Part shown: one piece after another, positions 5,928 to 45,095 of the stretch
How the letters are laid out: each line of letters begins with the position of its first letter
Numbering within the stretch: the stretch's first letter is position 1
Source: Phaeosaccion multiseriatum
Taxonomy: Eukaryota; Protista; Ochrophyta, other classes
DNA length: 64,000 nucleotides
Assembly: GCA_965112735.1 (NCBI GenBank)
Contig: OZ218957.1
Coordinates: forward strand, 124,001-188,000
Reading direction: 5' to 3'
Position numbers and translations under genes: made by a program
The notes under the pieces: model-generated
Told to the model about the DNA's origin: nothing
The model's input: the letters and a program-made list of their open reading frames with translations, nothing else
Database searches by the model: none

Positions 5928-10262
<4,335 letters not shown>

Positions 10263-22377: not shown

Positions 22378-25300
22378 ATGAAGATAAGGCAGCTGCAGCT
22401 GCTAACCATGCTTTGCGCCCAGGGATGGTTCGCAGCTCTCGTCCAGGCACAATGTAAGAGACAGAAGCAGCAATGGCGCATGTGTTGGGCGTGGGGGTGA
22501 GTGCGAGCATGTGTTGAGATCGAGACACAGGCGAAAGGAGAACATGTGAGGGTGAATCGATCCATCATGTAGCGTGCCCGCAGAAGCACCCACCACACAC
22601 CCACAAGCGTACCCTAACTGATGCCAGCCGCACGTTTCGCTTCATCCCACGCCTCTCCCTCAACAGCACCCCCGCCCACGCCCCCCCCTGGCACGGTAAG
22701 CAAGGCCAGCCTCGTTTTATGTATTTGTTGCCTTGCAGTCAACCGCGTCGCTCCCATCTCTTCCTCTTTGCTCATCACAGCAGCCACCTTTATCACCAAC
22801 TGCTGTTACTGCTGCTGTATCACCACCTGCTGTTACTGCTGCTGTATCACCAACTGCTGTTACTGCTGCTGTATCACCACCTGCTGCTGCTCGGCGCTTG
22901 TGATTCCCACCCACCCATACCTCACCACGGCCCCTTCCACTGCCATCTATAACCCTCAGCCCTCTCGCCCCCTCGTGCCTCTCTCTCTCGTCCTCACACG
23001 GGCCCCTCCCCTCCCCTCAGGAGCCCGCAGCTCCCCCATCATGCGCAGAGAAAGACGAGGTTTGCAGGCCGAACTCGATTTTCTATGACGACTGCTGCCC
23101 GGGGCTGGAGTGTAGAAGTGATTTTGACATCTTGAACTTGACCACCCTGAGAACCAGCTCCTCCCGCCAGGGCTACGCATACACCTGCATAGTGAGTGTG
23201 TGTGTGCGTGTGTGCGTGTGTGCGTGTGTGCATGCGAAGATCCAGACACCGCGGCTGTATGACCAACTGCTGCTGTTGCTGCTGCTCCTGTTGCTGGTTT
23301 AGGGTTAGGAAATACCCCTCCCCTCCTCGAGGGGGGTCGGCCGCACCCACCCATACACCTCACCACGGCCCCTTCCACTGCCATCTTACCCTCAACCCTC
23401 TCGCCCGCTCTGTTCCTCTGTGCTCCTCGTGCCTCTCTCGCCCTTGAGGACCCCTTGGAGACCCCGGCACCGGCACCGGTAAGTAAAGGTGGAGTACCAA
23501 ACATACATTTTCATCAACATGTGTATTTGTTTATGTATATTTATGTATGTATGTGTGTGTGACTACGGGCATGGCAATCCATGGGTGGCTCATCAGCGGC
23601 ACCACCCCACCCCCACCCACCCAGTCTCTGCGTCTGTTGGAGATGTTCCATCTGGACTCTTGTGTACCCGCCTCGAATGCCCTCTCGCTGTCTCTTATTC
23701 TTATCCTCACTGCCGGCCACAGGAACCCACGCCAGTCCCCACTCCGCCCCCTACACCTGTCCCGACAACACCCGTTCCAACACCGGTGCGTACGGGAGTG
23801 CTTAACCTTGTCGCTCTCAGCGTCTCCCTCTTTGCTCACTTCAACACCTGCACCTGTGCCTCACCTCTTCTTCCGCCCGTCCTTCCCTTCAGGCGCCTTC
23901 GTGTCAAGCAGATGCGGACGCCTTCCTGAGCATGACTGACCAGGAGCTGTTCGACATGCAAGACTCCGACAACAGGATTGGCGAATACTGCTACAACCGA
24001 CAAATCTCTAGCAGCTCTGCTGCCTGCAACTACTACGTCCTGGCGGTACCGAGCGCCACTCATTCCGGCTGGCCCCGCACCACCCCAGGCGACGCAGGGA
24101 CCGGCTGTGTGTATGAGGGTGACGGGGGCCCGACCAGGTGCTTCTATGAGGACGCAGATTACGATCTCACCGAGGAGGAACGCGACTCCATGTGCACGCA
24201 GGACGTCGTGGCCAATGCGGCGGCTCAACTGCGTCATGCCATCACGAATGGAGCTTGCTGTGACGCGACTGAGGTATGTATGCATGTATGTATGTATGTA
24301 TGTATGAATGTTTGTGACCACGGGCAGGGATGGCAATCTATGGGTGTACATACGTGGACGGATGGTGGGCAGCTCATCAGCGGCACCACCCACCCAGTCT
24401 CTGCGTCTGTTGGGGATGTTCCATCTGGACTCTTGTGTACCGCCTCTAATACCCTCTCGCCCTATCCTCCCCTCCTCTTTCTGCTTCCTACCCTCACTGC
24501 CGGCCACAGGAACCCACGCCAGACCCCACTCCTGCTCCAACACCAGTACGTACCGGAGTGCTTAATCAGCATGGCCCCTTCCACTGCCATCCATAACCCT
24601 CAACCCTCTCGCCCCCTCTCTTCCTCTGTGCTCCTCGTGCCTCTCTCTCTCGTCCTCACACGGGCCCCTCCCCTCCCCTCAGGTGCCCGCAGCTCCCCCA
24701 TCATGCGCAGAGAAAAACGAGATTTGCAGGCCGAACTCGAGGTTCTACGACGACTGCTGCCCCGGGCTGGAGTGTCAGTTTCGTATTGTGAGGACCCCCT
24801 TGTATTACAGCAGCTCCTCCGCCTTGGCCTACTCATACGACTGCATAGTGAGTGTGTGTGTGTGTGCGTGTGTGCATGCGAAGATCCGGACACCGCGGCT
24901 GTATGACCAACTGCTGCTGCTGCTGCTCCTGTTGCTGGTTTAGGGTTAGGAAATACCCCTCCCCTCCTCGAGGGGGGTCGGCCGCAGCCACCCATATACC
25001 TCACCATGGCCCCTTCCACTGCCATCTAACCCTCAACCGTCTCGCCCCCTCTCTTCCTCTGTGCTCCTCGTGCCTCTCCCGCCCTTCAGGACCCCTTGGA
25101 GACCCCGGCACCGTCACCGGCACCGGTAAGTAAAGGTCACTAAAATGTATATTTATGTATGTGTGTGTGACTACGGGCAGGGATGGCAATCTATGGGTGT
25201 ACGTACGTAGACGGATGGCTCACACCCCACCAGCCCAGTCTCTGCGTCTGTTGGAGATGTTCCATCTGGACTCTTGTCGAATGCCCTCTCGCTCTCTCTT

Positions 25301-28300
25301 TTTCTTACCCTCACTACCGGCCCCTCCAACACCGGTACACACGGAAGTGCTTAACCTTCTTGTCTCTCTCAGAGAGTCCCTCTTTGCTCACTTCAACACC
25401 TGCACCTGTGCCCCACCCCTTCTTCCGCCCGTCCTCCCCTTCAGGCGCCTTCGTGTCAAGCAGATGCGGACGCCTTCCTGAGCATGACTGACCAGGAGCT
25501 GTTCGCCACGCGCATGATTGGCGACTACTGCTACAACCGAAACCTCAGGACCAGAGGAAATGCTTCCTGCAACTACTATGTCCTGGCGGTAGCGAGCGCC
25601 ACTCATTCCGGCTGGCCTCGCACCACAGACGACACAGGGACCGGCTGTGTGTATGAGGGTGACGGGGGCCCGACCACGTGCTTCTATGAGGACGCAGATT
25701 ACGATCTCACTGATGCGGAACGCAGCTCCATGTGCACGCAGGACGTCGTGGCCAATGCGGCGGCTCAACTGCGTCATGCCATCACGAATGGAGCTTGCTG
25801 TGACGCGACTGAGGTATGTATGCATGTATGTATGCATGTATGAATGTTTGTGACCACGGGCAGGGATGGCAATCTATGGGTGTAATCCGTGGGCAGCTCA
25901 TCAGCGGCACCACCCACCCAGTCTCTGCGTCTGTTGGGGACGTTCCATCTGGACTCTTGTGTACCCGCCTCGAATGCCCTCTCGCCGTCTCTTATTCTTA
26001 TCCTCACTGCCGGCCACAGGAACCCACGCCAGTCCCCACTCCTGCCCCTACAATGGTCTCCACCACGCTAGACCCCACTCCTGCCCCTACAATGGTTTCC
26101 ACCACGCTAGACCCCACTCCTGCCCCTACACCTGTCCCGACAACACCCGCTCCAACGCCCGCTCCAACACCCGTACGTACCGGATGGCTTAATCAGCACG
26201 GCCCCTTCCACTGCCATCTAACCATCAGCCCTCTCGCCCGCTCTGTTCCTCTGTGCTCCTCGTGCCTCTCTCGCCCTTCAGGAGCCGACGCTCGAGCCCA
26301 CGCCCTCCCCGACACCGGTACCAACAGGGACGCCAACAGCCACCCCCACAGCGACAACCACGGAAGCACCGACTCAAGCGCCCACTCTGGCTCCAACGGC
26401 CGCACCAACTGCAGCGCCGACGCTAGCCCCAACTCTGGCCCCGACTCAGGTGCTAACCCTAAGTGTCTTGATTGTCTGCCTCTCCTCTCTGCTCCTCTTT
26501 TCTAACCCTAGCCCACCCTTGTGTTCTCAGGCCCCAACGGCAACACCAACTGCAGCGCCGACTCGAGCTCCAACTACAGCACCCACGGAAGCCCCGGTAG
26601 CGGAAACGGAACCGCCAACTGTGGCCCCAACAGTGGCCCCAACAGTAGCACCAACAGCGATACCAACAGACACCCCCACAGCGACACCCACGGAAGCCCC
26701 GGTAGCGGAGACGGAACCGCCAACTGTGGCCCCAACAGTAGCACCAACAGGTACACCAACGGACACTCCCACAGCGACGCCCACGGAAGCGCCGGTAGCG
26801 GAAACGGAACCACCAACTGCGGCCCCAACAGTAGCACCGACAGGGACACCAACGGACACCCCCACAGCGACGCCCACGGAAGCGCCGGTAGCGGAAACGG
26901 AACCACCAACTGCGGCCCCAACAGTAGCACCGACAGGTACGCCCACAGAGGCGCCATCCGGAACCCCCACGGCATCGCCCACAGAAGCACCGATAGAGGC
27001 TTCTGCTCCTTCACCTGTTCCATCGACTCTCACCTCTCCTCCCACACCAGCCCCCATCCCTCTCACCCCTCCTCCCACACTGGCCCCCATCCCTCTCACT
27101 CCTCCTCCCACACCAGCCCTTCTCACTCCTCCTCCCACACCGGCCCCCATCCCCCTCACCCCTCCTCCCACACCAGCCCCCATCCCTCTCACCTCTCCTC
27201 CTACCCTACCTCCCACACCGGCCCCCACCCCTCTCACTCCTTCTCCCACACCGGCCCCCGCTCCAATCATTCTCACCACTCCCCCTATCGATCCGCCGAC
27301 TCCCAGCCCCGCACTACCCCCTAGCTTACCTTCGTTACCACCTCCCACTTCACCCCCTTCGTCGCCACCCACCCCTCCCCCGGTTGCTGAAGACACCGAT
27401 CCGCCTGTAGCTGTGGTGACACCTGCTCCTGTTATCGAGACATCACCTCCAACTGCGACGGACGCACCTGTGGCTGCGACTCTTCCGCCAACAGCGACAC
27501 CAACAGCACCTCCAACGCCAGCACCAATTCCAGGCACGGCTGCACCCACGTCCCCTCCAACGTCCCCTCCAACGTCCCCTCCCACGCCTTCTCCCATTCT
27601 TCTCACCTCTCCACCCACACCGGCCCCCATCCCTCTCACTCCTTCTCCCACACCGGCCCCCATCCCTCTAATCCCTCCTCCCACCTTCCCTCCCACACCA
27701 GCCCCCATCCTTCTCACTCCTCCTCCCACATCGGCCCCCATCACTCTCACCCCTCCTCCCACACCACCTCCCACACCAGCCCCCATCCCTCCTCCCACCC
27801 TAACTCCCACACCGGCCCCCATCCCTCTAATCCCTCCTCCCACCTTCCCTCCCACACCGGCCCCCATCCTTCTCACCCCTCCTCCCACACTACCTCCCAC
27901 ACCGGCCCCCATCCCTCTAATCCCTCCTCCCACCCCACCTCCCACACCGACCCCCATCCTTCTCACCCCTCCTCCCACACCGGCCCCCATCCCTCTCACT
28001 CCTTCTCCCACACCGGCCCCCATCCCTCTAATCCCTCCTCCCACCCTACCTCCCACACCGGCCCCCATCCCTCTAATCCCTCCTCCCACCCCACCTCCCA
28101 CACCGGCCCCCATCCTTCTCACCCCTCCTCCCACACCAGCCCCCATCCCTCTCACTCCTTCTCCCACACCGGCCCCCATCCTTCTCACCCCTCCTTCCAC
28201 CTTCCCTCCCACACCGGCCCCCATCCTTCTCACCCCTCCTCCCACACTACCTCCCACACCAGCCCCCATCCCTCCTCCCACCCTACCTCCCACATCGGCC

Positions 28301-31300
28301 CCCATCCCTCTCACCCCTCCTCCCACCCCACCTCCCACACCGGCCCCCATCCTTCTCACCCCTCCTTCCACCTTCCCTCCCACACCGGCCCCCATCCTTC
28401 TCACCCCTCCTCCCACACTACCTCCCACACCGGCCCCCATCCCTCCTCCCACCCTACCTCCCACACCGGCCCCCATCCTTCTCACCCCTCCTCCCACACT
28501 ACCTCCCACACCAGCCCCCATCCTTCTCACCCCTCCTTCCACCTTCCCTCCCACACCGGCCCCCATCCTTCTCACCCCTCCTCCCACACTACCTCCCACA
28601 CCGGCCCCCATCCTTCTAATCCCTCCTGCCACCCTACCTCCCACACCGGCCCCCATCCTTCTCACCCCTCCTTCCACCTTCCCTCCCACACCGGCCCCCA
28701 TCCTTCTCACCCCTCCTCCCACACTACCTCCCACACCAGCCCCCATCCCTCCTCCCACCCTACCTCTCACACCGGCCCCCATCCTTCTCACCCCTCCTCC
28801 CACACCAGCCCCCATCCCTCTCACTCCTTCTCCCACACCGGCCCCCATTCCTCTCACTCCTTCTCCCACACCGGCCCCCATCCTTCTCACCCCTCCTTCC
28901 ACCTTCCCTCCCACACCGGCCCCCATCCTTCTCACCCCTCCTCCCACACTACCTCCCACACCAGCCCCCATCCCTCCTCCCACCCTACCTCCCACATCGG
29001 CCCCCATCCCTCTCACCCCTCCTCCCACCCCACCTCCCACACCGGCCCCCATCCTTCTCACCCCTCCTTCCACCTTCCCTCCCACACCGGCCCCCATCCT
29101 TCTCACCCCTCCTCCCACACTACCTCCCACACCAGCCCCCATCCCTCCTCCCACCCTACCTCCCACACCGGCCCCCATCCCTCTCACTCCTTCTTCCACC
29201 CTCCCTCCCACACCGGCCCCCATCCCTCTCACCCCTCCTCCCGCCCCACCTCCCACACCGGCCCCCATCCCTCTCACTCCTTCTTCCACACCGGCCCCCA
29301 TCCTTCTCACCCCTCCTTCCACCTTCCCTCCCACACCGGCCCCCATCCTTCTCACCCCTCCTCCCACCCTACCTCCCACACCGGCCCCCATCCTTCTAAT
29401 CCCTCCTGCCACCCCACCTCCCACACCGGCCCCCATCCCTCTAATCCCTCCTTCCACCTCTCCTCCCACACCAGCCCCCATCCCTCTCACCCCTCCTCCC
29501 ACACCGGCCCCCATTCCTCTCACTCCTCCTCCCACACCGGCCCCCGCTCCAATCATTCTCACCACTCCCCCTATCGATCCGCCGACTCCCAGCCCCGCAC
29601 TACCCCCTAGCTTACCTTCGTTACCACCTCCCACTTCACCCCCTTCGTCGCCACCCACCCCTCCCCCGGTTGCTGAAGACACCGATCCGCCTGTAGCTGT
29701 GGTGACACCTGCTCCTGTTATCGAGACATCACCTCCAACTGCGACGGACGCACCTGTGGCTGCGACCCTTCCGCCAACAGCGACACCAACAGCACCTCCA
29801 ACGCCAGCACCAATTCCAGGCACGGCTGCACCCACGTCCCCTCCAACGTCCCCTCCAACGTCCTCTCCCACGCCCTCTCCCATTCTTCTCACCTCTCCAC
29901 CCACACCGGCCCCCATCCCTCTCACTCCTTCTCCCACACCGGCCCCCATCTCTCTAATCCCTCCTCCCACCTTCCCTCCCACACCGGCCCCCATCCCTCT
30001 CACTCCTTCTCCCACACCGGCCCCCATCCCTCTCACCCCTCCTTCTCCCACCTTCCCTCCCACACCGGCCCCCATCCCTCTCACTCCTTCTCCCACACCA
30101 GCCCCCATCCCTCTCACCTCTCCTCCTACCCTACCTCCCACACCAGCCCCCACCCCTCTCACTCCTTCTCCCACACCGGCCCCCATCCCTCTCACCCCTC
30201 CTTCTCCCACCTTCCTTCCCACACCGGCCCCCACCCCTCTCACTCCTTCTCCCACACCGGGCCCCATCCCTCTCACCCCTCCTTCCACCTTCCCTCCCAC
30301 ACCGGCCCCCACCCCTCTCACTCCTTCTCCCACACCGGCCCCCACCCCTCTCGAGACTGCTCCTCCTTCACCCACTCCATCGACACCTGAGACTGCTCCT
30401 CCTTCTCCCACTCCATCGACACCTGAGACTGCTCCTCCTTCTCCTGCTCCATCGACACCTGAGACTGCTCCTCCTTCACCCACTCCGTCGACACCGGAGA
30501 CTGCTCCTCCTTCTCCCACTCCATCGACACCTGAGACTGCTCCTCCTTCTCCTGCTCCTGCTCCCTTTGCAGAGACAGGGACGCCTCTGGGGACCCCTGC
30601 CCCTGCGGATGGGACAGAAGCTCCTCCTCCGTCTGATGGGACAGAAGCTCCTTCTCCGTCTGATGGTGGCGTGACTGAAGCTCCTTCTCCGGCTGATCGT
30701 GGCGTGACTGAAGCCCCTGCGGGCTGCACGGAGAAGACAGATTCCATCACTTCGCCAGATGGTGAGTGAGTGAGTGATTGAGTCTCTCTCTCTCTGTGTA
30801 TGTGTCCCCTGTCTGCCTACCTGCCTGGCTGCCTGCTTGCCTTCCTCCTTCCTCACGCTGTCACCCCCCCCCCCCCCCCCCCCCATCCACTGCCATCCCG
30901 TGCCGCCCCGTGTGCCTGTGAATGAATGTGAATGTGCAACACGTGTGGTTGTGGCACTCGCTCACAGAGGAGGACGAGGGCTTTATGTACGGCTGCTGCG
31001 GAACGGTGCTGGACCCGTCCACCGGCGAAGTGGTGCCCGTGAGGAGCAGCACCACCCTCATCCTCCGCAAGGTGCAGTTCTTAGACGCCGCTCAGACGGA
31101 GTACGACGTCTTGGCCGAGTATGACGCCACCGCTGCGGGTGTTTTCGGGTGTGCGGTGGATGCGGAGGTGGACAACGACGGCAACTTAGTCGTGCTGGGC
31201 GTGTCGGTGCCTGAGCCCGGGGTGCCCACTGTGGCGCCGACTGTGGAGACGACAACAGATGGAGAAGACGGAGGTGGAAGGCGGCGACGAGGCCTTCAGA

Positions 31301-34300
31301 CGGACGAAACAGACGAGACGGACGAAACAGACGAAACGGACGGAACCAAGACGTTCCTGCTGTACGTCAACCCTTCCAACTTCTCTGACACTTGCGAGGT
31401 AGAAGGCAGCGAAGGGGGCGGAGCGGGCGGAGGGGTCAGTATCGTGCAGCAGAGGGACGACGAACTCCTGGTGCGTGTCGTGTACAGCGACGCCCCAGCG
31501 CAAAACATCACTATAACTAAGGGTGGTTGTGCGGGCACGAGTTCCATTCCAACAGTAGACCTACGTGTGGACAAGCTCTACTTAGACGGACACGACTCCG
31601 GGATGGTCGTGGGCTCCGTGGTGGCGGTGGGGGTGGTACTGGTGGCCCTGGCGGGCGTGTTTGGCGTCGTGGGAGCTACGGCCACCTCGAGAGGGCCGCA
31701 GCCGTCAGCGAAGAGCCCCAGCTCGGCGAGGTGAGTGTGTGTGCGTGCGTGTGAGTATATGTGTATGTGGTGTGTGTGTGCGTGTGTGTGCCTACCTGTT
31801 TGTGCTTGTGTGTGCGCATGTGCGTTCTTCCTGACCCTGCCCCTACCTCCCGTCCTCTTGCCTATCCTTCCCCTCTCCCCATATGCTTCTAACTCCTCCC
31901 CTCCCTTCAGTGCCAAGGTGATGATTCAGCACGTGCAGGGCCTTGCCCTCCTCGCCTTCGCCGTGCCCGCAGAGAGGAGGTTCTCCGAGTTCGCCAGGGC
32001 CCTCTCCTGGACCAATCTGTGGTGGACAGTGGACTTCCTGGACGACAACGAGGACGCGGGGATTGGAGCGGATGATGTGGATGATGGGTTGAGGGATGTC
32101 TCTGGGGAAGGGGAGGACTCGTGCGGCGGGCAAGAGACCGTGAAACGCTTCGTCGGAAACCTCCTCCTGGCGGGGGGGCTCGTGCTCATCATGGTGAGTG
32201 ATTGGTGTCAGGACAAAGAGAGAGAGAGAGAGAGAGTCAGAACAGGAGCCTAACCCTCCTCCTCCTCGTCCTCTTCGTCCTAGGTGCTGCTGAACCTCGT
32301 GCTGGGCAGTTACATTGAGGCCAAATGGCACGCTCGAGAGAGGGCCAAGCTCGAATGGCGAGTGGCGCAGAGGGTGGGCATCACACGCGGGGCTGACATT
32401 CGAATGCACCTGACCCCCAGCCCCAAGGCGGCGTCGAGGGAGGGAGACCCCACCGTTCCCTCCCCCCCTCGATCAGAGTCGCTCATCCACAGGCCCTCAG
32501 TCACCTCCCTCCCGGCAGCGAGGTCTGAGTCCCTCTCCCTATCCTCTCGAGCGGCGTCAGCGGCCCTCGGAGTGGCATATAGGGATGAGCTCCGAGCGGC
32601 GGCGGAGTGGGACAGGGCGCAATGGAAGGAAGACAAGGTAAGGTGATCCTGTGTGAACGAACCTGACCCTGACCCTGACCCTGACCCTTACCCTTACCCT
32701 TACTCTGACGGTCCTGACCCACACCCACACCCTGACCCTGACCCTGATCCGTAACCCCACCCTCAGGCCAATCGGGGGCTGCCTGCCAAGGTGCCAAGCT
32801 TCTACCGGGTCAGTGGCGTCATCGAGCAGCCGCAAAATCATCATCTGCAGCAGCAGTATCAGCAGCAGCATGGTCGCGGGCGTGGGATTGAGGCGTGTGA
32901 GAGCAACAGCAGTGTGGGTGGCATGGCGGACCCAATCGTGTTCAACACGGCGGCGTTTGGTGGGCAACCTGAACCGCCCGAGACCCCCAAGTTCTGGACG
33001 TACTACCCGCACGTGCTGCTCGTGGTGATGGTGTTTATCTTGGAGGGCACTTCGCTGGCAGAGATGGGGGTAATGACCTCAAACTGCGACTGGGCGGTGG
33101 CCGTGGGGGTGCTGACCTTCCTCCTGCTGCCCTGCCTCATTGCACTGTACTGTGGGGGGTTTGTGGTAAAGCTGCTCCGGCAGAAGAGCGACTCCGCCCA
33201 CCAACTCGTGTTTGTGCGGTACGAAGACGAAGAGGAGGAGGGGGAGGGGAACGACGCTGCAGAGGGCGACGGCTCTTCTCGCCAAGTGAAGAACCAAAAG
33301 GTGGGGGTGTGGGAAAAGGTGAAGAGGTCCATGTCGGCAACGTTCTTCGAGGAGGAGCGCTTCTTGTCCTGCTTCGACACGGGTGAGTGAGTGAGTCCGT
33401 GGGGGTGTGTGAGTGAGTGAGGCAGTCAGTGGAGGTGTGTGAGTGAGTGAGTCAGTGAAGGTGTGTGAGTGAGTGAGTCAGTGGGGGTGTGTCTGAGTGA
33501 AGAACGGAGATGGAGAGGTGTGGAGAGAAGCTTTTTCGCGGCTGTGTGAAAAAGAAAAGGAACGTGCTAATATGACACCCCTCCTCTCTCCCTGCCGCCC
33601 CTCAGGAGCTTGGATGACGGTGTACTGCAATGAACCGGGACTCCTCGCGGCCGCTTCCGAGCAGCACCAACATAATCTACGCCGTGAGCAAAGGGAGGGA
33701 AGCGCTTTGGAAGTGTCGGCCCAGCGCGCTCTGAAGGTCAGAAAGAGGGTGGCAGAGGCAGAGCTTCTGCGCATCGGCAACGAGCCCATATACGCGGACT
33801 TCACAGATACCGGCCTGTACTACGCACTCTTCCTCTACGCCGAGATCCTAGCCCTGGCATCTGTGGCGGCCTTCGTGCCCGACGAGACGACGCAGCTCAT
33901 CATCTTCCTTGCTTTCACGGCTGTGAACTTGCTGTTCGTGGTTTTTGTTCGGCCGTTCTGTAACTCGGAGCTGAACCTGGTGGCCGGTGTGGGCGCGGGT
34001 GTGAACCTGTTGATGCTGGCGCTGCTGCTGACCATGCAGTTCGACGGTTACGCGGGGGGCGAGTTCGAGAGGAGGGCCACAAACGCCATCTTCGTCATGC
34101 AGGTGGGTGTCAAGTCAGTACAGTACCTAGTGTCAGGCAGGCCTGGTGTCAGTCAGTGCCTTGTCTTAATCAGTCTCTGGTTTCAGTCAGTACCTGGTGT
34201 CAGTACAGTACCTGGTGTCACCCAGGTTGTCGGTGGGCTTTTCGGTGAGGAGGGAGGTGAAGGCCATGGTGCTGCTGCCTGAGTAGTGCAGGGAAGAGAA

Positions 34301-35109
34301 GAGTGGGGGCTCTGTCCCTGACTGTGCCCCCCTCCCTTCCCTTCCCCTCTCCCCTCCCTTCCCCTCCCTTCCCGTCCCCTCTCTCCTTCCCTTCCCTCTG
34401 TCTGCAGATCGTGTTCCTCGTGACGGTTTCGCTGCCCCTGTACTTCGACGCCCTCCTGGGGCTGTGGCAGGCCGCCCTCTCGGCCTGGAGGTCCGACGAC
34501 GACGAGGACGAGGCAGGAGTATCAATGACGGCCAAGAGCGGTAAGGACGTTGAGACGGTAGACAATCACGACGTGGCGACCCTCCGGCAGCTGCGCAGGG
34601 AGGACAGGCAGGTGTTCCTGAACAAGCGGACGAGGGAGAACTGGAAGGCAGTCTACGGCAAGATGTTTAGGAAAAACTTCCTCCACTTCAAGGAGTGCCT
34701 CCGCTTGCCTCTGAAGAACCCGAGCCTGGCCACGCGTGGAGAGGGAGCCGAGATGGCAGCAGATGCCTCCGCGGTAGGAAGCCTCATGAGCGAGTTGGAC
34801 CCTAGGCCTCTAAGCAGCATCGGCAGCCTCAGCAGCAGCGGGAGCGTCAGCAGCAGCACCAAGAGCAGCAAGTTCATAGAGAACAGCGAAGTGCAATACG
34901 ACTTTGGCGGTTCGATTCGCTCGAATGGAAGCATCGATTCGCAGGCCTGGCCGGTGTACCCGAGGGGGGCGGGGGAGGGGGACGTGCCAAACCCGAACCC
35001 TACCGCCGCCGCTGGAGCCGCTGCTGCCCCTGGAGTGACGGGGCAGGACATCCAACCTGCTTCAGGAGCGGTCACCTGGGAAAGCCTCATCACCGACCGC
35101 CGGGTGTAG
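22378..35109 (+). CDS. Modular cell-surface receptor A: signal peptide, [knottin-like + 8-Cys domain] x2, ~1500-aa Pro/Thr stalk, juxtamembrane domain, ~9-TM FLC/Pkd2 (fungal TRP-like) domain. Exons 22378-22453, 22667-22695, 23021-23191, 23449-23478, 23723-23785, 23893-24273, 24510-24545, 24683-24847, 25090-25125, 25445-25813, 26020-26172, 26282-26449, 26531-30761, 30968-31730, 31911-32193, 32284-32637, 32767-33382, 33606-34102, 34408-35109
   Basis: Signal peptide [24 protein letters not shown]; frame-consistent GT-AG exons; membrane motifs [11 protein letters not shown]...[10 protein letters not shown] and Q.IIFL...[13 protein letters not shown] typical of the PF06011-like family. Confidence 0.8.
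26531..30600 (+). repeat. Coding minisatellite array ([10 protein letters not shown]-type, PVAETEPPT-type and TPETAPPSP-type units) with an internal ~450-bp near-perfect duplication (~27245-27690 vs ~29530-29990)
   Basis: Direct reading of DNA and of ORF 26450..30769. Confidence 0.95.
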
Positions 35110-35248
35110 CGGTTGAAGCGGGTGTAGCGGGGCGGTGTGTGAACCCTGCGGTGTGTGTGTGTGTCCCGGGGAGGACGTGTGTGTGTGTTTCCCTCCCGGG
35201 TGTGTGTGTGTGTGTGTCCCCAGGGTGTGTGTGTGTGTGTGTATGTAT

Positions 35249-35645
35249 TCAGAGCAGCGTCGGCTCCTTCGCCTCGGCAGCGCTCTCCGACTCGCCTCAA
35301 ACGACGAGCAGCATCATCAGCACAGTAGTAGGAGCAGCAGTATCAGCAGCAGTGGTCACCCCGGGCCCACAATCGGCATCAGCGATGGGACCGACCGGCC
35401 AGCACCACTTCTACCCGCCCGCACTCGAGCGTGCCCGGGCCCGTGCTTACGCTCCTGCTGCTGACCTGAGCAGCTCGAGTACTGGTGCCGCTGCTGCCAG
35501 CGCTACTGGGCGCCACTTACCGACCACCTTTTCCATTCGGAGGGCGGCGAGGAGAGCACACGTCAAGCGGCCGGTTACCCACTCCAGCCCCACTCGGACT
35601 AGAGGACGGCAGCAGCGGCAGCGGGGAGGGTGCCCGAATAGCTGG
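35249..35645 (+). pseudogene. Degenerate duplicated fragment of the last exon of the cNMP gene (homologous to ~20493-21200)
   Basis: Shared blocks cggctccttcgcctcgg...ccgactcgcctca...acgacgagcagcatca and gctgctgacctgagcagctcga.tactggtgccgctgctgccag, with deletions and frameshifts. Confidence 0.8.
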
Positions 35646-35783
35646 TAAGGTCAGCGACCAGCCCATATCATTTTTGGAGCGATGGGACTAGAGTGAGATA
35701 GAGATAGAGGTGTATAGGTAGAGAGATGGTTCTTGTTGGTAGGGGGAGGAATGTTCGTGTTACGTTGCTTGGAAGTGTCGTAC

Positions 35784-35903
35784 TCGACCCCTGACACGCT
35801 ATCCGCTGTCCGCTATCCGCTATCGGCCGATAGCGCGCTGTCGGGGGCGGGGGGGGGGGATAGCGCGCTATCGCGAATGTGGGCGATAGCGCGTCAGGGG
35901 TCG
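35784..35903. mobile_element. ~120-bp inverted-repeat element (MITE-like); arms TCGACCCCTGACRCGCTATC / GATAGCGCGTCAGGGGTCGA
   Basis: 20-bp inverted repeats with one mismatch and internal GCTATC/GATAGC repeats; a related sequence lies at 58713-58806. Confidence 0.55.
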
Positions 35904-36886
35904 ATATCGTACTGTAGCAGTTTTTCACTTGGGAGTTGAAAGTTGAAAGTTTTGCTGCAACACAGCCTGTTTCCCAATCCCCGCTCCTCACCTCACGGCA
36001 CCGCTCCACGGGCCCTTCTCGAATCATTCGGATCGTTCTTGGCCCCTCCTCGCGGAAATCTGATTGAGGATCATGATCCGACGGCGACAAGAAAATTGCT
36101 CCCGTTGCTGGTGGATCGCCACTAAAAAAAGTGAAAAAGCGACTGCCCAAGCCCCCCTTGAAGCAATGAGGGCAACTTCAGAGCCTCACATACAGAAGGG
36201 CATATCTCTGAGAGGAAGGAGTGAGAGAAGGAACAGCAGCAACCACAGAGGAGGAGAGCAAAGTAGCAGAGAAGGGCAGAACGAAGAGGGGAGGGTGGGC
36301 GATGGCGATGGATGGCAATGGAGCAGCACGGGGTTAGGGCAAGAAGGATTGTTTCCCTGTTGCCGGCACCGAAAAGCTTTAAGATACCCCAGCTGCTCCC
36401 CCTGTTCGTTGTGGCCTTGTCTTCTGCGGCCACCATGATCTCTTTCTTCAAGCTGCACTCACTTGGCAGTGCGGTTGTGGTGCCTCTGGTCATTGCGGCA
36501 TCCTCATCACGTGGGGATACGCCGCTGCCACTCGTTGTGGCGGTGGGCATGCTGGCGCTAGCCGGGGCAGCACTGCTGGGCGTCGTGGCTGCTGTGCGCG
36601 ACCCAAAGAAGGTGGGGCTGTGTGGAATGCCTGACACTCTGACCTGGTTGCGCCTCTCTCTCCGTAGCTCGGGCCTTGCTTGACGCGGTTGTTGCACCCC
36701 TCCCACCCGCTATCATTGCATGGCCCCACATGCCATTCCTCTCTTGTTCGCGGCCAACAGGCTTGGCTGTGCTCCTCCTAACTCTCCGCTGACCTTCCTC
36801 TTTTCCTCTCGGCCGCACCTCGTCCTCAGGGGCCTGGGTCTGCTCTGGAGGATGACTGCAGTTCTCCGTTCCACATTAGTAGAAAG

Positions 36887-39800
36887 ATGAAGGTGCAGCT
36901 GCTCTCCATGCTTTGTGCCTTACTACTACCTGCGCATCTCGTCCAGGGACAAGGTAAGAGAGTACTAAGATGGCAACCCATGGCGGACAAGCCAAGGAGC
37001 GCATTGAACAGGAACGGAAGGGTACAGTGGGAGTGGAGGAGGAGGAGGAGGAGTAGTAGTAGTAGCAGCAGCAGCAGCAGCGATGGTCCGTGTGCTTCGT
37101 CGGTGTTTCACTCTGTTTTGGGGAGCGAGGGGCGGGGGTGGAATTCGAATGCAAGTCTAGCAGACTATGAGGTGAGGGTGGATCGATCCATCATGTAGCG
37201 TGCCCGCAGGAGCACCCACCACACACGCACAAGCGTACCCTAACTGATGCCAGCCCCACGTTTCGCTTCATGGCACGCCTTCCCCACACCGGCACCGGCA
37301 CCGGCACCCACACAATAGGGAGTCCGACACCCACCCCAGCCGCGGTAAGGAATGGTACAAGCAGTTGGTGGTACAAGCAGTTGCATTGATTCTAGCTACT
37401 TTCTTGCACCTTCCTTGTAATGGCTTCTCACACTCGTCCACGTCCCTGCGTATTACTTGTGTATTTCGTTGGCTCATGCCGTATGCCATCTGTGCCCTAC
37501 CTGCTCCTCCCGTCCCTACCTGCAGGCAGCTACATGTGCAATAATCGACAACTTCCTTTACTTGTCGGACGAGGAGCTGTTCAACGTGTTCGAAGGTCCC
37601 GACAGCAGGATTGGCGACTACTGCCATATCCGGTACATCCCAGGCCGCGTGGCTGCTTGCAACTACTATGTCGTCGCTGCCCCGAGCACCATCACTGACT
37701 TCGTCGGCTGGCCCCGTACTAGCCTTGGCGACGCAGGGACCGGCTGTGTGTATGAGGGTGTGGAGGGCCCGACCAAGTGCTTCGTCAACGAGCCGAGCTA
37801 CGATCTCTCGCCAGAGCAGCGCTTGGACATGTGCTCGGAAGATGTCGTGGGTAATGCCGCGGCTCAGTTGCGCCATGCCATTAACAGTGGGGCGTGCTGT
37901 GCCTCGACTTACGTACGTGCATGCATCTTTGTATGTTTGTGTGTATGTACGTGTGTATGTGCGTGTATGTGTGTATGTGTGTGTATGTGTGTTTGTGTGC
38001 ATGTGTGTATGTGTACGTGCCTGTGTCCACGGCGTCCACTCAGCTAACGTCCGTGTGTGTGTGTGTGTGCTTCGACTCAAGCACCAAGTGTCAGAGCTGC
38101 TGTGGGGCTTCGGACGGCACTGCTCAACGGCGCCACGGCCACCATTCCTATGCCCATCCACTGCCATCTGTGCCCCTCTTGACTAGGGCCTTTACCGCCC
38201 CCCCTCTGTCTCTTGCTCTCCTCGTGCTTCCTCACTACCTCAGACGCCTCCGCCCACCCCCCCACCCGCGCCCACAGCTGAGGTGTGTGGGGTGATCGGC
38301 AGCAGGTGCGAGAATACCTTTGACACAGGCTGCTGCCCGGGGCTGGAGTGCATGAATACCGATTTTGATGTCTCCAGTGATAACGAGGGGGACGATTTCT
38401 TTCTTCATCACTGCCAGGTAGGTGTGTGTGTGCGGAGCCGCAGACCCCGAGGATGTATCACCAACTGCTGCTGCTGTATCACCAACTGCTGTTGCTGCTC
38501 GGCGCTTATGAGTCCCACCCACCCATACCTCACCACGGCCCCTTCCACTGCCATCTAACCCTCAACCCTCTCGCCCCCTCTCTTCCTCTGTGCTCCTCGT
38601 GCCTCTCTTCCCGACTCACACTGGACCTTCAGGAGCCCACACCGACGGATGCGTGTAGGGACTTGGACAGTTTCTGCCGCGGTCAGAACGACTGCTGCCC
38701 GGGGCTGGAGTGCGTGCCTTTGCCGGGGGATGCTTTCTATTTTAGTTACGGTGATTTGGACGCCTACGGGTACTTTCATAATCACATCTGCGAGGTAGGT
38801 GTGTGTGAGTGTGTGTGTGTGTGCGGAGCCGCAGACACCGAGGATGTATCAACAACTGCTGGCGTTTGTGATTCCCACCCACCCATACCTCACCACGCCC
38901 CCTTCCACAGCCATCTATTAGCTCAACCCTCTCGCCCCCTCTCTTCCTCTGTGCTCCTCGTGCCTCTCTCTCTCTGCCTCACACAGGCCCCTCAGGAGCC
39001 CACACCGACGGATGCGTGTGGGGTCTTGGACAGTTTCTGCGACCCTCAGAACGACTGCTGCACGGGGCTGGAGTGCGTGCCTTTGCCGGGAAATTATTAC
39101 CATACTGGTAGTGATTTTGGTGATTTCGAGGGGTTATACTACGGGGAATACTACTATTACTTTAGTCATATCTGCCAGGTGTGTGTGTGTGCGGAGCCGC
39201 AGACACAGAGGATGTATCACCAACTGCTGCTGCTGCTACTGATGCTTGTGATTCCCACCCACCCATACCTCACCACGGCCCCTTCCACTGCCATCTATAA
39301 GCCTCAACCCTCTCGCCCCCTCTCTTCCTCTGTGCTCCTCGTGCCTCTCTCTCTCCAACTCACACTGGACCTTCAGGAGCCCACACCGACGGATGCGTGT
39401 GGGGACTTGGACAGTTTCTGCCGCGGTCAGGACGACTGCTGCACGGGGCTGGAGTGCGTGCCTTTGCCGGGGGATGATTACTATTTTAGTTATGGTGATT
39501 TGGACGGCTACGGGTGCTGTAATCATATGTGCCAGGTGTGTGTGTGTGTGAGTGGGTGTGTGTGGATGATGCTCGCCTTGGGCTGATGGGCCCCTTCTTC
39601 CTCTTAAATGTAGTGTAACTCACTCACTCACCTACACACTCATTCACTCGCTCGTTCGCGCACACAATCACTCACTCACGCACTCACTCGCTCGCTCGCT
39701 CGCTGACTCACTTCACTCACTCACTCACTCCACTCACTCACTCCCTCACTCACTCCGCCTTGAAGTGGTGATTCACGGGTTCGAGCTCTGCTGCCACTCC

Positions 39801-42800
39801 TCCTCCTCTCTCTCTCATCCTGTTCTGTTACGTCACGTCTTCGCCTTCTCCCCTCTTCCCCCCCTTCGCCAGGCGCCATCCGGAACCCCCACGGCAGCGC
39901 CCACAGAAGCACCGACAGAGACTGCTGCTCCTTCACTTGCCCCTTCGACACCAGCGACTGCTGCTCCTTCACCTGCCCCTTCGACACCAGCGACTGCTGC
40001 TCCTTCACCTGCCCCTTCGACACCAGCGACTGCTGCTCCTTCGCCTGCCCCTTTGACACCAGCGACTGCTGCTCCTTCGCCTGCCCCTTTGACACCAGCG
40101 ACTGCTGCTCCTTCACCTGCCCCTTCGACACCAGCGACTGCTGCTCCTTCACCTGCCCCTTCGACACCAGCGACTGCTGCTCCTTCGCCTGCCCCTTTGA
40201 CACCAGCGACTGCTGCTCCTTCGCCTGCCCCTTTGACACCAGCGACTGCTGCTCCTTCACCTGCCCCTTCGACACCAGCGACTGCTGCTCCTTCGCCTGC
40301 CCCTTTGACACCAGCGACTGCTGCTCCTTCACCTGCCCCTTCGACACCAGCGACTGCTGCTCCTTCGCCTGCCCCTTTGACACCAGCGACTGCTGCTCCT
40401 TCGCCTGCCCCTTTGACACCAGCGACTGCTGCTCCTTCACCTGCCCCTTCGACACCAGCGACTGCTGCTCCTTCACCTGCCCCTTCGACACCAGCGACTG
40501 CTGCTCCTTCACCTGCCCCTTCGACACCAGCGACTGCTGCTCCTTCACCTGCAGAGGCATTCGACGCTCCAGCGGTGAACCCATCGAACCCCTCTCTCCC
40601 GCGATCACTCGCGCCGGCTACGGACCCCTCCGACACAGGAGACGCTTCTCCGAGTGATGGTGGCGTGACAGAAACTCATTCTGCTTCTGACGCTACTCAA
40701 ACGTATTACTATCATCATTCTTCTTATTCTTCTCATGATTTAGAGGGGGGTACAACGGGGCATGCAAACTGCAGGACAGATTCCGTCACTTCGCCAGACG
40801 GTGAGTGAGTGAGTGAGTGAGTGAGTGCGTGAGCCGGTTCGCTCTCTCAAAGTCTCTGTCTCTGTGTGTGCGTGTCGTGCCTTCCTGTCTGCCTGCCCGC
40901 CTGGCCCCCTCTCTTCCCTCCTCACGCCCTCACCGCTTCCCTTCCGATCCACTGCCATCCTGTGCCGCCCCGTGTGCCTGTGAATGAATGTGAATGTGCA
41001 ACACGTGTGGTTGTGGCACTCACAGGCGAGGACTTTGTGTACGGCTGCTGCGGAACGGTGCTGGACCCGTCCACCGGCGAAGTGGTGCCCGTGAGGAGCA
41101 GCACCACCCTCATCCTCCTCAAGGTGCAGTTCCTTGACACCATTCGGACGGAGTACACCGTCTTGGCCGAGTATGACGCCGCCGCTGCGGGGGTGAGCGG
41201 GTGTGCGGTGGATGTGGAGGTGGACAACGACGGCAACTTGCTCGTGCTGGGCGTGTCTCAGCGGCTGGCGGTCCTCGGGCCTGAACCCGTGCAACCGAAC
41301 GTGGAGACGACAGCAGACGGAGGCCGCGGACTTGAAAGGTTGTTGGAAGGCCTTCAGACGGTCGACGGAGCGGACATGGACAGCGGAAGCGAGACGTTCC
41401 TGCTGTACGTCAACCCTTCCAACTTCGCTGACCTCTGCGGCGTGGTACAAGGCATCGGAGGGGGCGGAGCGGGCCGAGGGGTCAGTATCGTGCGGCAGAC
41501 GGTCGACGAGCTCGTGGTGCGTGTCCACTACATCGACGGCCCCTCGCAGGACATCAGTATGCTTGACGAAGCATCTTGTGCGGGGTATGCGACGCAGCTG
41601 GGCATAGGAACTGACGTGCCGGTGGACAAGCTCTACATAGACGGGCACGACTCCGGAGTATTCGTGAGCACCTTTCTGGCGGTGGGTGTGGTACTGGTGG
41701 CCCTGGCGGGCGTGTTTGGTGTCGTGGGGGCTACGTCCACCTCGAGAGGGCCGCAGCCGTCAGCGAAGAGCCCCAGCTCGGCGAGGTGAGTGTGTGTGCG
41801 TGTGTGTGTGTGTGAGGTGTGTGTGTGTGTATGTGTGTGTATGTGTGTGTGTGTGTGAGGTGTGTGTGTGTGTGTGTGTGCGTGTCTACGTTTGCGTGTG
41901 TGTGCGTGCGTGTGCGTGTGCGTGTGAGAGGTGTGTGAGGTGTATGTGAGTGTGTTTGTGGGTGCGTGCGTGTCTACGTCTACGTGTGTGTGCGTGCGTG
42001 TCTACTGTGCAGAGGTGTGCGTGTGTGCGCATGTGCGTTCTTCCTGACCCTGCCCCTACCTCCCGTCCTCTTGCCTATCCTTCCCCTCTCCCCATATGCT
42101 TCTAACCCCTCCCCTCCCTTCAGTGCCAAGGTGATGATTCAGCACGTGCAGGGCCTTGCTCTCCTCGCCTTCGCCGTGCCCGCAGAGAGGAGATTCTCCG
42201 ACTTCGCCAGGGCCCTCTCCTGGACCAATCTGTGGTGGACAGTGGACTTCCTGGACAACAACGAGGAGGAGGGGATTGCAACGGATGGGTCGAGGCAGTT
42301 GTCTGGGGAAGGGGAGGACTCGTGCGGCGGGCAAGAGACCGTGAAACGCTTCGTCGGAAACCTCCTCCTGGCGGGGGGGCTCGTGCTCATCATGGTGAGT
42401 GATTGGTGTCAGGACAAAGAGAGAGAGAGAGAGAGAGAGAGTCAGAACAGGAGCCTAACCCTCCTCCTCCTTGTCCTCTTCGTCCTAGGTGCTGCTGAAC
42501 CTCGTGCTGGGCAGTTACATTGAGGCCAAATGGCAGGCCCGAGAGAAGGCCAAGCTCGAATGGCGAGTGGCACAGAGGGTGGGCATCACACGCGGGGCTG
42601 ACATTCGAATGCACCTGACCCCCAGCCCCAAGGCGGCGTCAAGGAAGGGAGACCCCGCCCTCCCCTCCCCCCCCCGACCAGAGTCGCTCAAGGGCAGGCC
42701 CTCAGTGACCGCCCTCCCGGCAGCGAGGTCTGAGTCCCTCTCACTTTCCTCTCGAGCGGCGTCAGCGGCCCTCGGAGTGGCGTATAGGGATGAGCTCCGA

Positions 42801-45095
42801 GCGGCGGCGGAGTGGGACAGGGCGCAGTGGAAGGAAGACAAGGTAAGGTGATCCTGTGTGAACGAACCTGACCCTGACCCTGACCCTTACCCTTACTCTG
42901 ACGGTCCTGACCCACACCCACACCCTAACCCTAAGCGTGACCCTGACCCTGACCCTGACCCATAACCCAACCCTCAGGCCAATCGGGGGCTGCCTGCCAA
43001 GGTGCCAAGCTTCTACCGGGTCAGTGGCGTCATCGAGCAGCCGCAAAATCATCATCTGCAGCAGCATTGGAGCCGCGGGCGTGGGATTGAGGCGTGTGAG
43101 AGCAACAGCAGTGTGGGTGGCATGGCGGACCCAATCGTGTTCAACACGACGGCGTTTGATGGGTACCCTGAACCGCCCGAGACCCCCAAGTTCTGGACGT
43201 ACTACCCGCACGTGCTGCTCGTGGTGATGGTGTTTATCTTGGAGGGCACTTCGCTGGCAGAGATGGGGGTAATGACCTCAAACTGCGACTGGGCGGTGGC
43301 CGTGGGGGTGCTGACCTTCCTCCTGCTGCCCTGCCTCATTGCGCTGTACTGCGGGGGGTTTGTGGTGAAGCTGCTCCGGCAGAAGAGCGACTCCGCCCAC
43401 CAACTCGTGTTTGTGCGGTACGAAGACGAAGAGGAGGAGGAGGAGGGGAACGACGCTGCAGATGGCGACGGCTCTTCTCGCCAAGTGAAGAACCAAAAGG
43501 TGGGGGTGTGGGAAAAGGTGAAGAGGTCCATGTCGGCAACGTTCTTCGAGGAGGAGCGCTTCTTGTCCTGCTTCGACACGGGTGAGTGAGTGAGTCAGTG
43601 GGGGTGTGTGAGTGAGTGAGGCAGTCAGTGGAGGTGTGTGAGTGAGTGAGTCAGTGAAGGTGTGTGAGTGAGTGAGTCAGTGGGGGTGTGTCTGAGTGAA
43701 GAACGGAGATGGAGAGGTGTGGAGAGAAGCTTTTTCGCGGCTGTGTGAAAAAGAAAAGGAACGTGCTAATATGACACCCCTCCTCTCTCCCTGCCGCCCC
43801 TCAGGAGCTTGGATGACGGTGTACTGCAATGAACCGGGACTCCTCGCGGCCGCTTCCGAGCAGCACCAACATAATCTACGCCGTGAGCAAAGGGAGGGAA
43901 GCGCTTTGGAAGTGTCGGCCCAGCGCGCTCTGAAGGTCAGAAAGAGGGTGGCAGAGGCAGAGCTTCTGCGCATCGGCAACGAGCCCATATACGCGGACTT
44001 CACAGATACCGGCCTGTACTACGCACTCTTCCTCTACGTCGAGATCCTAGCCCTGGCATCTGTGGCGGCCTTCGTGCCCGACGAGACGACGCAGCTCATC
44101 ATCTTCCTTGCTTTCACGGCTGTGAACTTGCTGTTCGTGGTGATGCTTCGGCCGTTCTGTAACTCGGAGCTGAACCTGGTGGCCGGTGTGGGCGCGGGCG
44201 TGAACCTGTTGATGCTGGCGCTGCTGCTGACCATGCAGTTCGACGGTTACGCGGGGGGCGAGTTCGAGAGGAGGGGCACAAACGCCATCTACGTCATGCA
44301 GGTGGGTGTCAAGTCAGTACAGTACCTAGTGTCAGGCAGGCCTGGTGTCAGTCAGTGCCTTGTCTTGATCATTGCCTGGTTTCAGTCAGTGCCTGGTGTC
44401 AGTCAGTGCCTGGCGTCAGCCCGGTGGGTGGGCTGGGGTGGGGTGGGCTTTTCGGCGAGGATGGGGGTAAGGGCCCGGAAACCCCCTCCCCCTCACCTCG
44501 TGCTGAGCCTGAGTAGTGCGAAGAAGAGAGAGAAACTCTGTCCCTGACATTGCCCCCTCCCCTCTCCCCTCTCCCCTCTCCCCTCTGTCTGCAGGTCGTG
44601 TTCCTCGTGACGGTTTCGCTGCCCCTGTACTTCGACGCCCTCCTGGGGCTGTGGCAGGCCGCCCTCTCGGCCTGGAGGTCCGACGACGACGAGGACGAGG
44701 CAGGAGTAACCACATCCATGAAGACCAAGGGCGGTAAGGACGTTGACACGGTAGACAATCACGACGTGGCGACCCTCCGGCAGCTGCGCAGGGAGGACAG
44801 GCAGGTGTTCCTGAACACGCGGACGAGGGAGAACTGGAAGGCAGTCTACGGCAAGATGTTGAGGAAGAACTTCCGCCACTTTAGGGAGTGCCTGCGCTTG
44901 CCTCTGAAGAACCCGAGCCTGGCCACGCGTGGAGAGGGAGCCGAGATGGCAGCAGATGCCTCCGCGGTAGGCTCGCTTGGAAGCCTTAGGAGCGAGTTGG
45001 GCGCAGAAGAGACTGGGCAGGACACCCGAGCTGCTCCACAAGAGAACACCTGGGAGAACCTCCTCTCCGGCCGCCGGTTTAGCGGGGTGGCGTGA
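36887..45095 (+). CDS. Modular cell-surface receptor B (paralog of A): signal peptide, one 8-Cys domain, four knottin-like modules, ~300-aa Pro/Thr/Ala stalk, juxtamembrane domain, ~9-TM FLC/Pkd2-like domain. Ectodomain exons 36887-36953, 37318-37343, 37526-37912, 38244-38417, 38633-38794, 38996-39178, 39377-39535, 39873-40800, then six exons from 41026 to 45095
   Basis: Signal peptide MKVQLLSMLCALLLPAHLVQG; the 3' half has the same exon structure as A and near-identical TM exons. Confidence 0.8.
39921..40552 (+). repeat. 33-bp coding tandem repeat (TAAPSPAP[S/L]TPA), about 19 copies
   Basis: Direct reading. Confidence 0.95.

Follow-up and report, generated by a model that had tools for sequence, protein, structure and literature searches.

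A tandem gene pair of Phaeosaccion multiseriatum predicted to encode giant stalked surface proteins with exchangeable cysteine-rich heads

What is encoded by two adjacent genes that join small cysteine-rich cassettes to a long Pro/Thr-rich stalk and a membrane part of many helices, and what might such proteins do? The question is raised by a stretch of 64,000 nucleotides from the ochrophyte alga Phaeosaccion multiseriatum (the window; G000:C8:124001-188000, in a genome of 67 Mb, 22 contigs and roughly 60% G+C), in which the two genes, termed A and B, form a head-to-tail pair on the + strand. Judged from their sequence, A and B very probably each encode a giant stalked surface protein. Comparison of exons and introns demonstrates that the predicted ectodomains were built by duplication, loss and exchange of exon-plus-intron cassettes of symmetrical phase. 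As for function, there is about an even chance that the proteins are tethered surface sensors, in which the head would bind a partner outside the cell and a Pkd2-like membrane module would report load or occupancy.

The gene models were obtained by reading the DNA by eye, followed by a script check of frames and splice sites. Searches and structure predictions were run on single exons or uninterrupted open reading frames (ORFs), and the spliced models served for counts of stops and hydrophobicity. Gene A (22378-35109) comprises 18 exons with a coding sequence of 9084 nt for 3027 amino acids, and gene B (36887-45095) comprises 13 exons with 5043 nt for 1680 amino acids; the script found zero internal stops in either. 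All acceptors are AG and all donors are GT in the 17 introns of A and the 12 of B. The initial annotation had placed the pair at 22378-45095, and the ATG of A (22378) and the stop codon of B (ending at 45095) lie at exactly these ends. The models also bear out the domain orders it proposed, namely signal peptide (SP), knottin-like cassette (K), eight-cysteine cassette (C8), K, C8 and stalk for A (SP-K-C8-K-C8-stalk, with short Pro/Thr linker exons between cassettes) and SP-C8-K-K-K-K-stalk for B. Downstream of the stalk, A and B alike have a juxtamembrane (JM) exon and five more exons (E2 to E6), which together encode about nine transmembrane (TM) helices. The features, in window coordinates, are as follows.

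22378-22453, + strand: gene A exon 1, encoding the signal peptide (ATG start, basic n-region, then hydrophobic core and VQA/Q; 25 codons and one base; phase-1 GT donor)
23021-23191, + strand: gene A K1 knottin-like cassette (6 Cys; phase-0 acceptor at 23021, internal acceptor after the SP exon at 23031)
23449-23478 (10 aa) and 23723-23785 (21 aa, Pro/Thr), + strand: gene A linker exons, both phase 0-0
23893-24273, + strand: gene A C8-1 cassette (127 aa, 8 Cys, phase 0-0)
24510-24545, + strand: gene A Pro/Thr linker exon (12 aa, phase 0-0)
24683-24847, + strand: gene A K2 knottin-like cassette (55 aa, phase 0-0)
25090-25125, + strand: gene A linker exon (12 aa, phase 0-0)
25445-25813, + strand: gene A C8-2 cassette (123 aa, phase 0-0)
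26020-26172 and 26282-26449, + strand: gene A Pro/Thr linker exons, phase 0-0
26531-30761, + strand: gene A stalk exon (1410 aa; conserved end motif; phase-1 donor)
30968-31730, + strand: gene A JM domain and TM1 (beta-rich, 5 Cys; phase 1 in, phase 2 out)
31911-32193 (E2) and 32284-32637 (E3), + strand: gene A, TM2, TM3 and a basic cytosolic loop
32767-33382, + strand: gene A E4, with TM4, TM5 and a cytosolic loop
33606-34102, + strand: gene A E5, with TM6-TM8 and a PF06011 match at profile positions 282-365
34408-35109, + strand: gene A E6, with TM9, cytosolic tail and stop codon
36887-36953, + strand: gene B exon 1, signal peptide (phase-1 donor)
37530-37912, + strand: gene B C8 cassette (phase 1-0 via the internal acceptor gcag/ct)
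38244-38417, 38633-38794, 38996-39178 and 39377-39535, + strand: gene B, four K cassettes, each of phase 0-0, with many Tyr, Asp, Gly, Ser and Phe residues in the last loop
39873-40800, + strand: gene B stalk exon (309 aa; phase-1 donor after ...T-S-P-D-G)
41026-41785 (JM and TM1), 42124-42394 (E2), 42489-42842 (E3), 42978-43581 (E4), 43805-44301 (E5) and 44595-45095 (E6 and stop), + strand: gene B membrane module
22911-23020, + strand: one copy of a conserved intron flank of ~100 nt that precedes K and linker exons (further copies have their ends near 23448, 24682, 25089, 26281, 38632, 38995 and 39376)

Every domain and linker had been taken at first to sit on its own exon of phase 0-0. This is true of the internal cassette and linker exons, of which ten in A and the four K exons in B are phase 0-0 with lengths divisible by three. 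It is not true of the first cassette, the end of the stalk or the membrane module. The SP exons of both genes end in phase 1. An internal acceptor, gcag/ct, occurs in the two K exons of A as well as in B's C8 exon; the first cassette, entered through this acceptor, is of phase 1-0, and only in this way is the frame kept after the SP exon. The stalk exons end in phase 1, and the exons of the membrane module are of mixed phases.

That the cassette, stalk and membrane exons form a single gene each in A and in B is favored because several features of the predicted models agree. The frames are intact, and the junctions JM/E2, E2/E3, E3/E4 and E4/E5 of A align without gaps to an intron-poor paralogue ORF (L020:3869-6325, 819 aa, uninterrupted). 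Additionally, the end of the stalk exon, C-T-E-x-T-...-S-P-x-G followed by a phase-1 donor, is kept in A, B and paralogues on contigs C10 and C13, the JM exon has no conserved start codon, and the order head-stalk-module recurs in paralogues and in brown-alga gene models. An ATG at 30922, ahead of the JM exon, fits the frame in A and not in B, and is absent in the paralogues; a separate gene starting there was rejected, the ATG being out of frame in B.

Both stalks consist of long tandem repeats rich in Pro, Thr and Ser, as in mucins, and are presumably O-glycosylated. The stalk of A, initially estimated at about 1500 residues, measures 1410 (42% Pro, 20% Thr; tandem repeats of 33, 45 and 171 nt); that of B, estimated at about 300, measures 309 (26% Pro, 16% Thr, 14% Ser; a 36-nt repeat in 17.7 copies).

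The membrane module was described in the initial annotation as a TRP/FLC-like domain of nine TM segments. Hydropathy gives eight strong TM segments and a weak one (TM2), and the positive-inside pattern, with basic loops inside, fits nine segments with the N-terminus outside and the C-terminus inside. An SP, an extracellular N-terminal part, about nine TM segments and a cytosolic tail constitute the layout of PF06011-type proteins. The gathering cut-off of the Pfam family PF06011, 28.5 bits, is passed by two paralogue loci, C13:3316264 (31.5 bits) and C10:2614276 (29.1 bits), and by a brown-alga homologue, P0018 (36.3 bits). When the P. multiseriatum genome was scanned with PF06011, the top matches were loci of the A/B family, two of them above the cut-off. 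Moreover, 21 of the 44 rows in an alignment of the family match PF06011 at profile positions ~280-420 (TM6-TM9), and no other Pfam family recurs in more than two of the 44. These matches support a relation to PF06011, so that the module is best described as a divergent PF06011-type domain and not as a canonical TRP channel. No canonical TRP fold or fold match was obtained, the best VIA/Foldseek Z for a model of the module being 9.1, to generic helix bundles, and a profile of the module had zero matches among PDB sequences. A canonical six-TM TRP/polycystin channel was rejected, as no Ion_trans or PKD_channel domain appeared in the Pfam scans and no channel was among the fold matches of this medium-quality model. 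The ML-like domain TRP_N (PF14558) was not found by Pfam in the JM exon or in the 819-aa paralogue ORF, and an Atlas feature search with the JM domain returned nothing usable.

The K cassettes resemble knottins in sequence. Six invariant cysteines and a CC-x-G-L-x-C core are common to ten of them (six in A and B, four in paralogues), and their spacing, C-x6-C-x5-9-CC-x4-C-xn-C with Cys3 and Cys4 adjacent, is that of inhibitor-cystine-knot (ICK) peptides. In a comparison of the K profile with all PDB sequences, 43 of 43 matches were ICK peptides, including spider toxins (double-knot toxins among them), gurmarin, asteropsins and conotoxins; the best was Xt3a (E = 5.5e-6). Pfam Toxin_22 matched at E = 0.059 only. 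The earlier description of K as knottin-like is thus supported, and the likeness to ICK peptides may be convergent. With such peptides (DkTx, Hi1a, gurmarin, asteropsins, conotoxins) the K cassettes share cysteine spacing, tandem knots per chain and variable loops between conserved flanks. In contrast to these free peptides, the knots of A and B are predicted modules of a giant membrane protein, and their last loop is long. If so, they represent membrane-tethered knottins outside animals, plants and fungi.

The introns that flank the K cassettes are homologous, as had been proposed. Over 110 nt of intron upstream of the K exons, identity is 91-98% among five of the six cassettes, A-vs-B pairs included, and 76-85% in pairs with K_B1; within the K exons it is only 62-92%. 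For the two K cassettes of A, the difference between exon and intron divergence is significant (Fisher p = 1e-5). The flank is not a genome-wide repeat: this was rejected by the count of a 23-mer within it, which has 11 copies in the 67-Mb genome, of which 8 fall within A or B, and marks a local element. Divergence among K cassettes is concentrated in the loop between Cys5 and Cys6 (nonsynonymous rate, dN, 0.12-0.72; synonymous rate, dS, 0.15-0.66), and the scaffold is nearly unchanged. This last loop is 19-31 residues long and rich in Tyr, Asp, Ser and Gly. By these sequence comparisons the K loop is locally hypervariable. The whole-exon dN/dS of recent K copies is ~1.0-1.2; positive selection is unproven by this ratio because dS in the loop is raised too. 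With near-identical introns around a diverged loop, the K cassettes offer a compact system for studying local hypervariability.

The C8 domain is of another kind. It comprises 123-127 residues with eight invariant cysteines and long invariant motifs, and it is an orphan domain, with no relative in Pfam, a PDB profile search, an Atlas feature search or a protein homologue search. Its AlphaFold2 (AF2) model had a mean predicted local distance difference test score (pLDDT) of 57, and a structure search with that model matched nothing. In seven of the eight pairs of C8 exons tested, dN/dS is 0.15-0.67 (1.25 for A1 vs A2); on this measure C8 is conserved, not diversified.

C8 also provides the clearest evidence of cassette exchange. 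The domain recurs 18 times at C16:1913062-1944282, in about six secreted tandem genes. The unit common to A/B and contig C16 is about 1 kb long and consists of the linker exon, introns and the C8 exon, with DNA identity of 76-89%. At the protein level, C8-1 of A is 89-94% identical to 15 of the 18 C16 copies and 74-77% to the other three, compared with 84% to C8-2 of the same gene and 60% to the C8 of B. The presence of the C8 unit, introns included, in genes on another contig implies that cassettes move between genes. With symmetrical exons, and the same module and introns in unrelated contexts, cassette shuffling as put forward in the initial annotation is shown to be real at the level of the predicted genes, and it clearly exemplifies how exon cassettes are exchanged between genes located on different chromosomes.

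The C16 locus itself (G000:C16:1912400-1945300; L014-L017) holds six-odd tandem genes, each with a signal peptide homologous to that of B. They contain 3, 2, 5, 2, 4 and 2 C8 units, Pro/Thr (PT) linkers and three to four copies of another six-cysteine repeat (N-C-A-A-L-G-W-P-G-S-C-...-C-x-C-W-...-A-C-S-W-S-G-x-S-C), after which they stop. No TM segment was seen in these genes and no Pfam match was found; they probably encode secreted matrix proteins.

The history of the pair can be read from how similarity changes along the genes. As first noted, A and B share one membrane module and differ in their ectodomains: the 3' 3 kb of the two genes is 91% identical, introns included, and dS is only 0.016-0.025 in E4 and E5 but reaches 0.23 for the JM exon and, when the C8 exons are compared, 0.64. 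A and B are also homologous in intron 1 and in their promoter-proximal DNA. A whole-gene tandem duplication, after which the ectodomain was remodelled and the 3' part kept alike by conversion, would fit these values; so would a recent duplication followed by replacement of the ectodomain.

A and B belong to a larger family. The initial annotation had proposed counting the paralogues, and a search of the P. multiseriatum genome with E5 of A gave 12 loci (two on contig C8, three on C10, three on C13, one each on C5 and C6, and two weak ones). The predicted family comprises at least ten genes, whose ectodomains vary. The paralogues on contigs C5 and C13 have one K-like cassette and a stalk of roughly 800 to 3000 residues, and four paralogues contain one K cassette each. 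One member on contig C13 (L027:5063-9997/L028; G000:C13:3295063-3306000) combines one K-like cassette with a pair of proprotein-convertase P-domains (PF01483, E = 7.6e-29), a stalk of ~3000 residues and the same module. Two others, on contig C10 (L019/L020; G000:C10:2555500-2566900), are arranged head-to-head with an almost intronless membrane module and short PT linkers only; the minus-strand copy is in two overlapping frames (6058-6909 and 6764-8587), the mark of a frameshift or a short intron. A member on contig C1 (L032; G000:C1:3364200-3369970, minus strand), which matches the family profile with an hhalign probability of 99.85%, is more like the brown-alga proteins and has a large repeat-rich ectodomain. 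Upstream in L032 lies an open frame of 718 aa, whose G-x-T-D-V/A-x-V repeats suggest a beta-propeller; it had no Pfam match. Across the family, one kind of membrane module may serve as the base for interchangeable heads (knottin, 8-Cys, P-domain and others), with stalk lengths from 300 to about 3000 residues.

Against 1.84 billion representative proteins, E5 gave only 23 matches (best E = 1.7e-11, 30% identity), and the ten that were looked up are all from brown algae, Chrysoparadoxa or Tribonema, either unnamed or called 'hypothetical'. These homologues share motifs through TM2-TM9 and a PT-rich N-terminus. Homologue searches with an 806-aa paralogue ORF, the C8 cassette and the family alignment were all blank. 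The brown-alga, Chrysoparadoxa and Tribonema proteins (for example, Ectocarpus Esi_0451_0007 / D7G1L9) resemble A and B in the membrane module and in a Pro/Thr/Ala-rich N-terminal region, and one member, P0034, has Cys-rich repeats between PT linkers. They differ in that identity is 25-41% over the match and JM, K and C8 are not seen; the proteins are uncharacterised. From an annotation line, they are probably the 'TRP, C-terminal' orthogroup OG0000126, listed as expanded in the Phaeoexplorer preprint; no link by identifier between them and the Phaeoexplorer ion-channel table was found. Unnamed relatives of the A/B module are spread across the brown algae.

Of the explanations considered for A and B, a tethered surface sensor fits best because the conserved core of the family is stalk plus module and the heads vary. 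The signal peptide would send the N-terminus outside the cell, and the tip would be formed by disulfide-rich heads, that is, K cassettes with a variable last loop and the conserved 8-Cys domain. The Pro/Thr stalk of 309 or 1410 residues, presumably O-glycosylated, would space the head from the membrane, and the beta-rich JM domain would link the stalk to the nine-helix module with its cytosolic tail. The head would then bind matrix, cell covering, another cell or a particle, and binding or a pull on the stalk would be passed to the membrane module and become an inward signal. The likeliest output, by analogy with Pkd2 of fission yeast, would be stretch-dependent entry of Ca2+. Fission-yeast Pkd2, of which no structure has been solved, allows passage of Ca2+ on membrane stretch (PMC9727806); it consists of a signal peptide followed by an ML-like domain, a TM domain and a cytosolic tail (PMC6727746), and it is located at the plasma membrane and tied to wall integrity (PMC6727746, PMC9727806). 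The label 'channel-like' is used for the A/B module only because of these published results on fungal Pkd2. If expressed at the surface, the proteins would be candidates for touch, matrix or partner sensing in wall-less or scale-covered algae and in seaweeds.

Several points weigh against a sensor of this kind. The ligand, the localisation and the Ca2+ role of the A and B proteins are predicted only. Against PF06011, A and B reach no more than 16.9-17.6 bits, by E5 alone, the domain spanning five exons that were scored exon by exon, and the intron-poor paralogue ORF (L020:3869-6325) gave no Pfam match. The AF2 model of a paralogue module is middling (pLDDT 61; predicted template modelling score 0.51), and it retrieved nothing specific from Foldseek PDB, VIA wide or the ESM Atlas. 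Even for the proteins of PF06011, channel function is only putative, and none has a solved structure. Furthermore, no RNA run was found among public sequencing runs. Four public runs, all from one sample, contain the stretch, with 72-84% of its words; since introns are included, they are probably DNA from the assembly's own sample.

Comparison with known systems places A and B near, and not within, several of them. The closest are the fungal Flc/Pkd2 proteins (PF06011, InterPro 'TRP, C-terminal'; S. pombe Pkd2, S. cerevisiae Flc1-3 and Yor365c), which share the signal peptide, extracellular N-terminal part, about nine TM segments and cytosolic tail, and to which the A/B family is similar in sequence at profile positions ~280-420. 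Unlike them, A and B have a beta-rich JM domain where TRP_N sits in fungi (TRP_N was not detected), a very long mucin-like stalk, knottin and C8 heads and large inserted cytosolic loops. To our knowledge, Flc/Pkd2-type proteins have been studied almost only in fungi, where they have one small lipid-binding ectodomain. In general plan, A and B also recall yeast Wsc1 and Mid2 and animal polycystin-1/polycystin-2, with a Cys-rich or glycan head on a long Ser/Thr/Pro rod or large ectodomain and a membrane part that reports mechanical load; however, these are not homologous to A and B, and Wsc1 and Mid2 cross the membrane only once. No WSC, PKD, GPS/GAIN, PLAT or PKD_channel domain was found when all exons and the paralogue ORFs were scanned with Pfam, and a WSC or PKD1-type sensor by homology was rejected on that account. 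In the brown-alga immune candidates of the LRR-ROCO and NB-ARC-TPR types (PMC3341825, PMC11378527), repeat modules on symmetrical exons are likewise duplicated and exchanged, but their LRR and TPR modules are cytosolic, whereas those of A and B are predicted to be extracellular and disulfide-rich, on a membrane protein and in a small repertoire. The architecture of A and B had been called undescribed at the outset, and no account of it was found in the literature.

An unlikely alternative is that A and B are diversified recognition receptors (for self and non-self, mating, prey or pathogens), with the knottin loops as paratopes and the module as a ligand-gated channel. The concentration of K divergence in the Cys5-Cys6 loop, with scaffold and flanking introns near identical, would be expected of such receptors, as would the dN/dS of about one over whole exons of recent copies. 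Antibody paratopes are rich in Tyr, Asp, Ser and Gly, as the K loops are. The number of cassettes also differs between A and B, and the published exon shuffling in brown-alga immune candidates provides a precedent. However, six K cassettes in the pair and one in each of four paralogues are far below a repertoire of immune size, C8 is conserved, and many brown-alga homologues have a stalk and no Cys-rich head. Moreover, with dS in the loop equally raised, a dN/dS near 1 is explained by relaxed constraint or patchy conversion as well as by positive selection.

Distinctly unlikely is a passive, membrane-anchored mucin or adhesin for the glycocalyx or cell covering, with a module that would serve for anchoring or trafficking only and send no signal. 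The huge, repeat-driven stalks suit such a protein, and C8 is common to the secreted, probably matrix, proteins encoded on contig C16. Nine helices with conserved cytosolic loops and tail, however, far exceed the needs of an anchor, and the module has been kept from this alga to brown algae, Chrysoparadoxa and Tribonema, with motifs through TM2-TM9. Very unlikely is a gene-model artefact or a pair of dead genes, with cassette-stalk and membrane parts separate or the loci silent: RNA support was not found, ATG 30922 is in frame with the JM exon in A, one linker exon copy of A looks degraded and a C10 paralogue in L019 may carry a frameshift, but the coding sequences, 9.1 kb and 5.0 kb long and split by 17 and 12 canonical introns, keep intact frames, that ATG does not fit the frame in B and is missing from the paralogues, a Cys-rich JM domain lacking a signal peptide would stay cytosolic, and paralogues and brown-alga gene models repeat the order of head, stalk and module.

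A bolder reading is also conceivable. The K cassettes might be true variable binders, in which a knottin scaffold holds a hot patch of ~60-90 nt that changes ~10 times faster than the surrounding exon and introns; the patch might be driven by local hypermutation or micro-conversion, with whole cassettes reshuffled between genes; and ligand capture at the stalk tip might gate a Pkd2-like Ca2+ pathway. That all of these hold jointly is highly improbable. If they did, the proteins would represent an algal surface-recognition system on a principle not described before.

Minor features of the introns were also observed. At 25260-25330 in the window, in the second K-C8 unit of A, the CAG context of the acceptor is gone at the site corresponding to the Pro/Thr linker exon of 21 aa; loss of the exon leaves the frame unaffected because it is of phase 0-0. 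At 33383-33500, 43582-43699, 30762-30785 and 40801-40830, the donors open tandem repeats containing GTGAGT (units of 26-30 nt or GTGA runs), and the position of donors at repeat starts gives several equivalent donors in succession. Lastly, a dispersed 15-mer, CAGTTGGTGATACAG, is found on the minus strand within introns of both genes, just 3' of K exons (22788-22883, 23255-23269, 24899-24913, 38453-38488 and 39212-39226). It has 16 copies in the window compared with 0 expected, and it translates as QQLVIQQ within an open frame of the C5 paralogue (L025).

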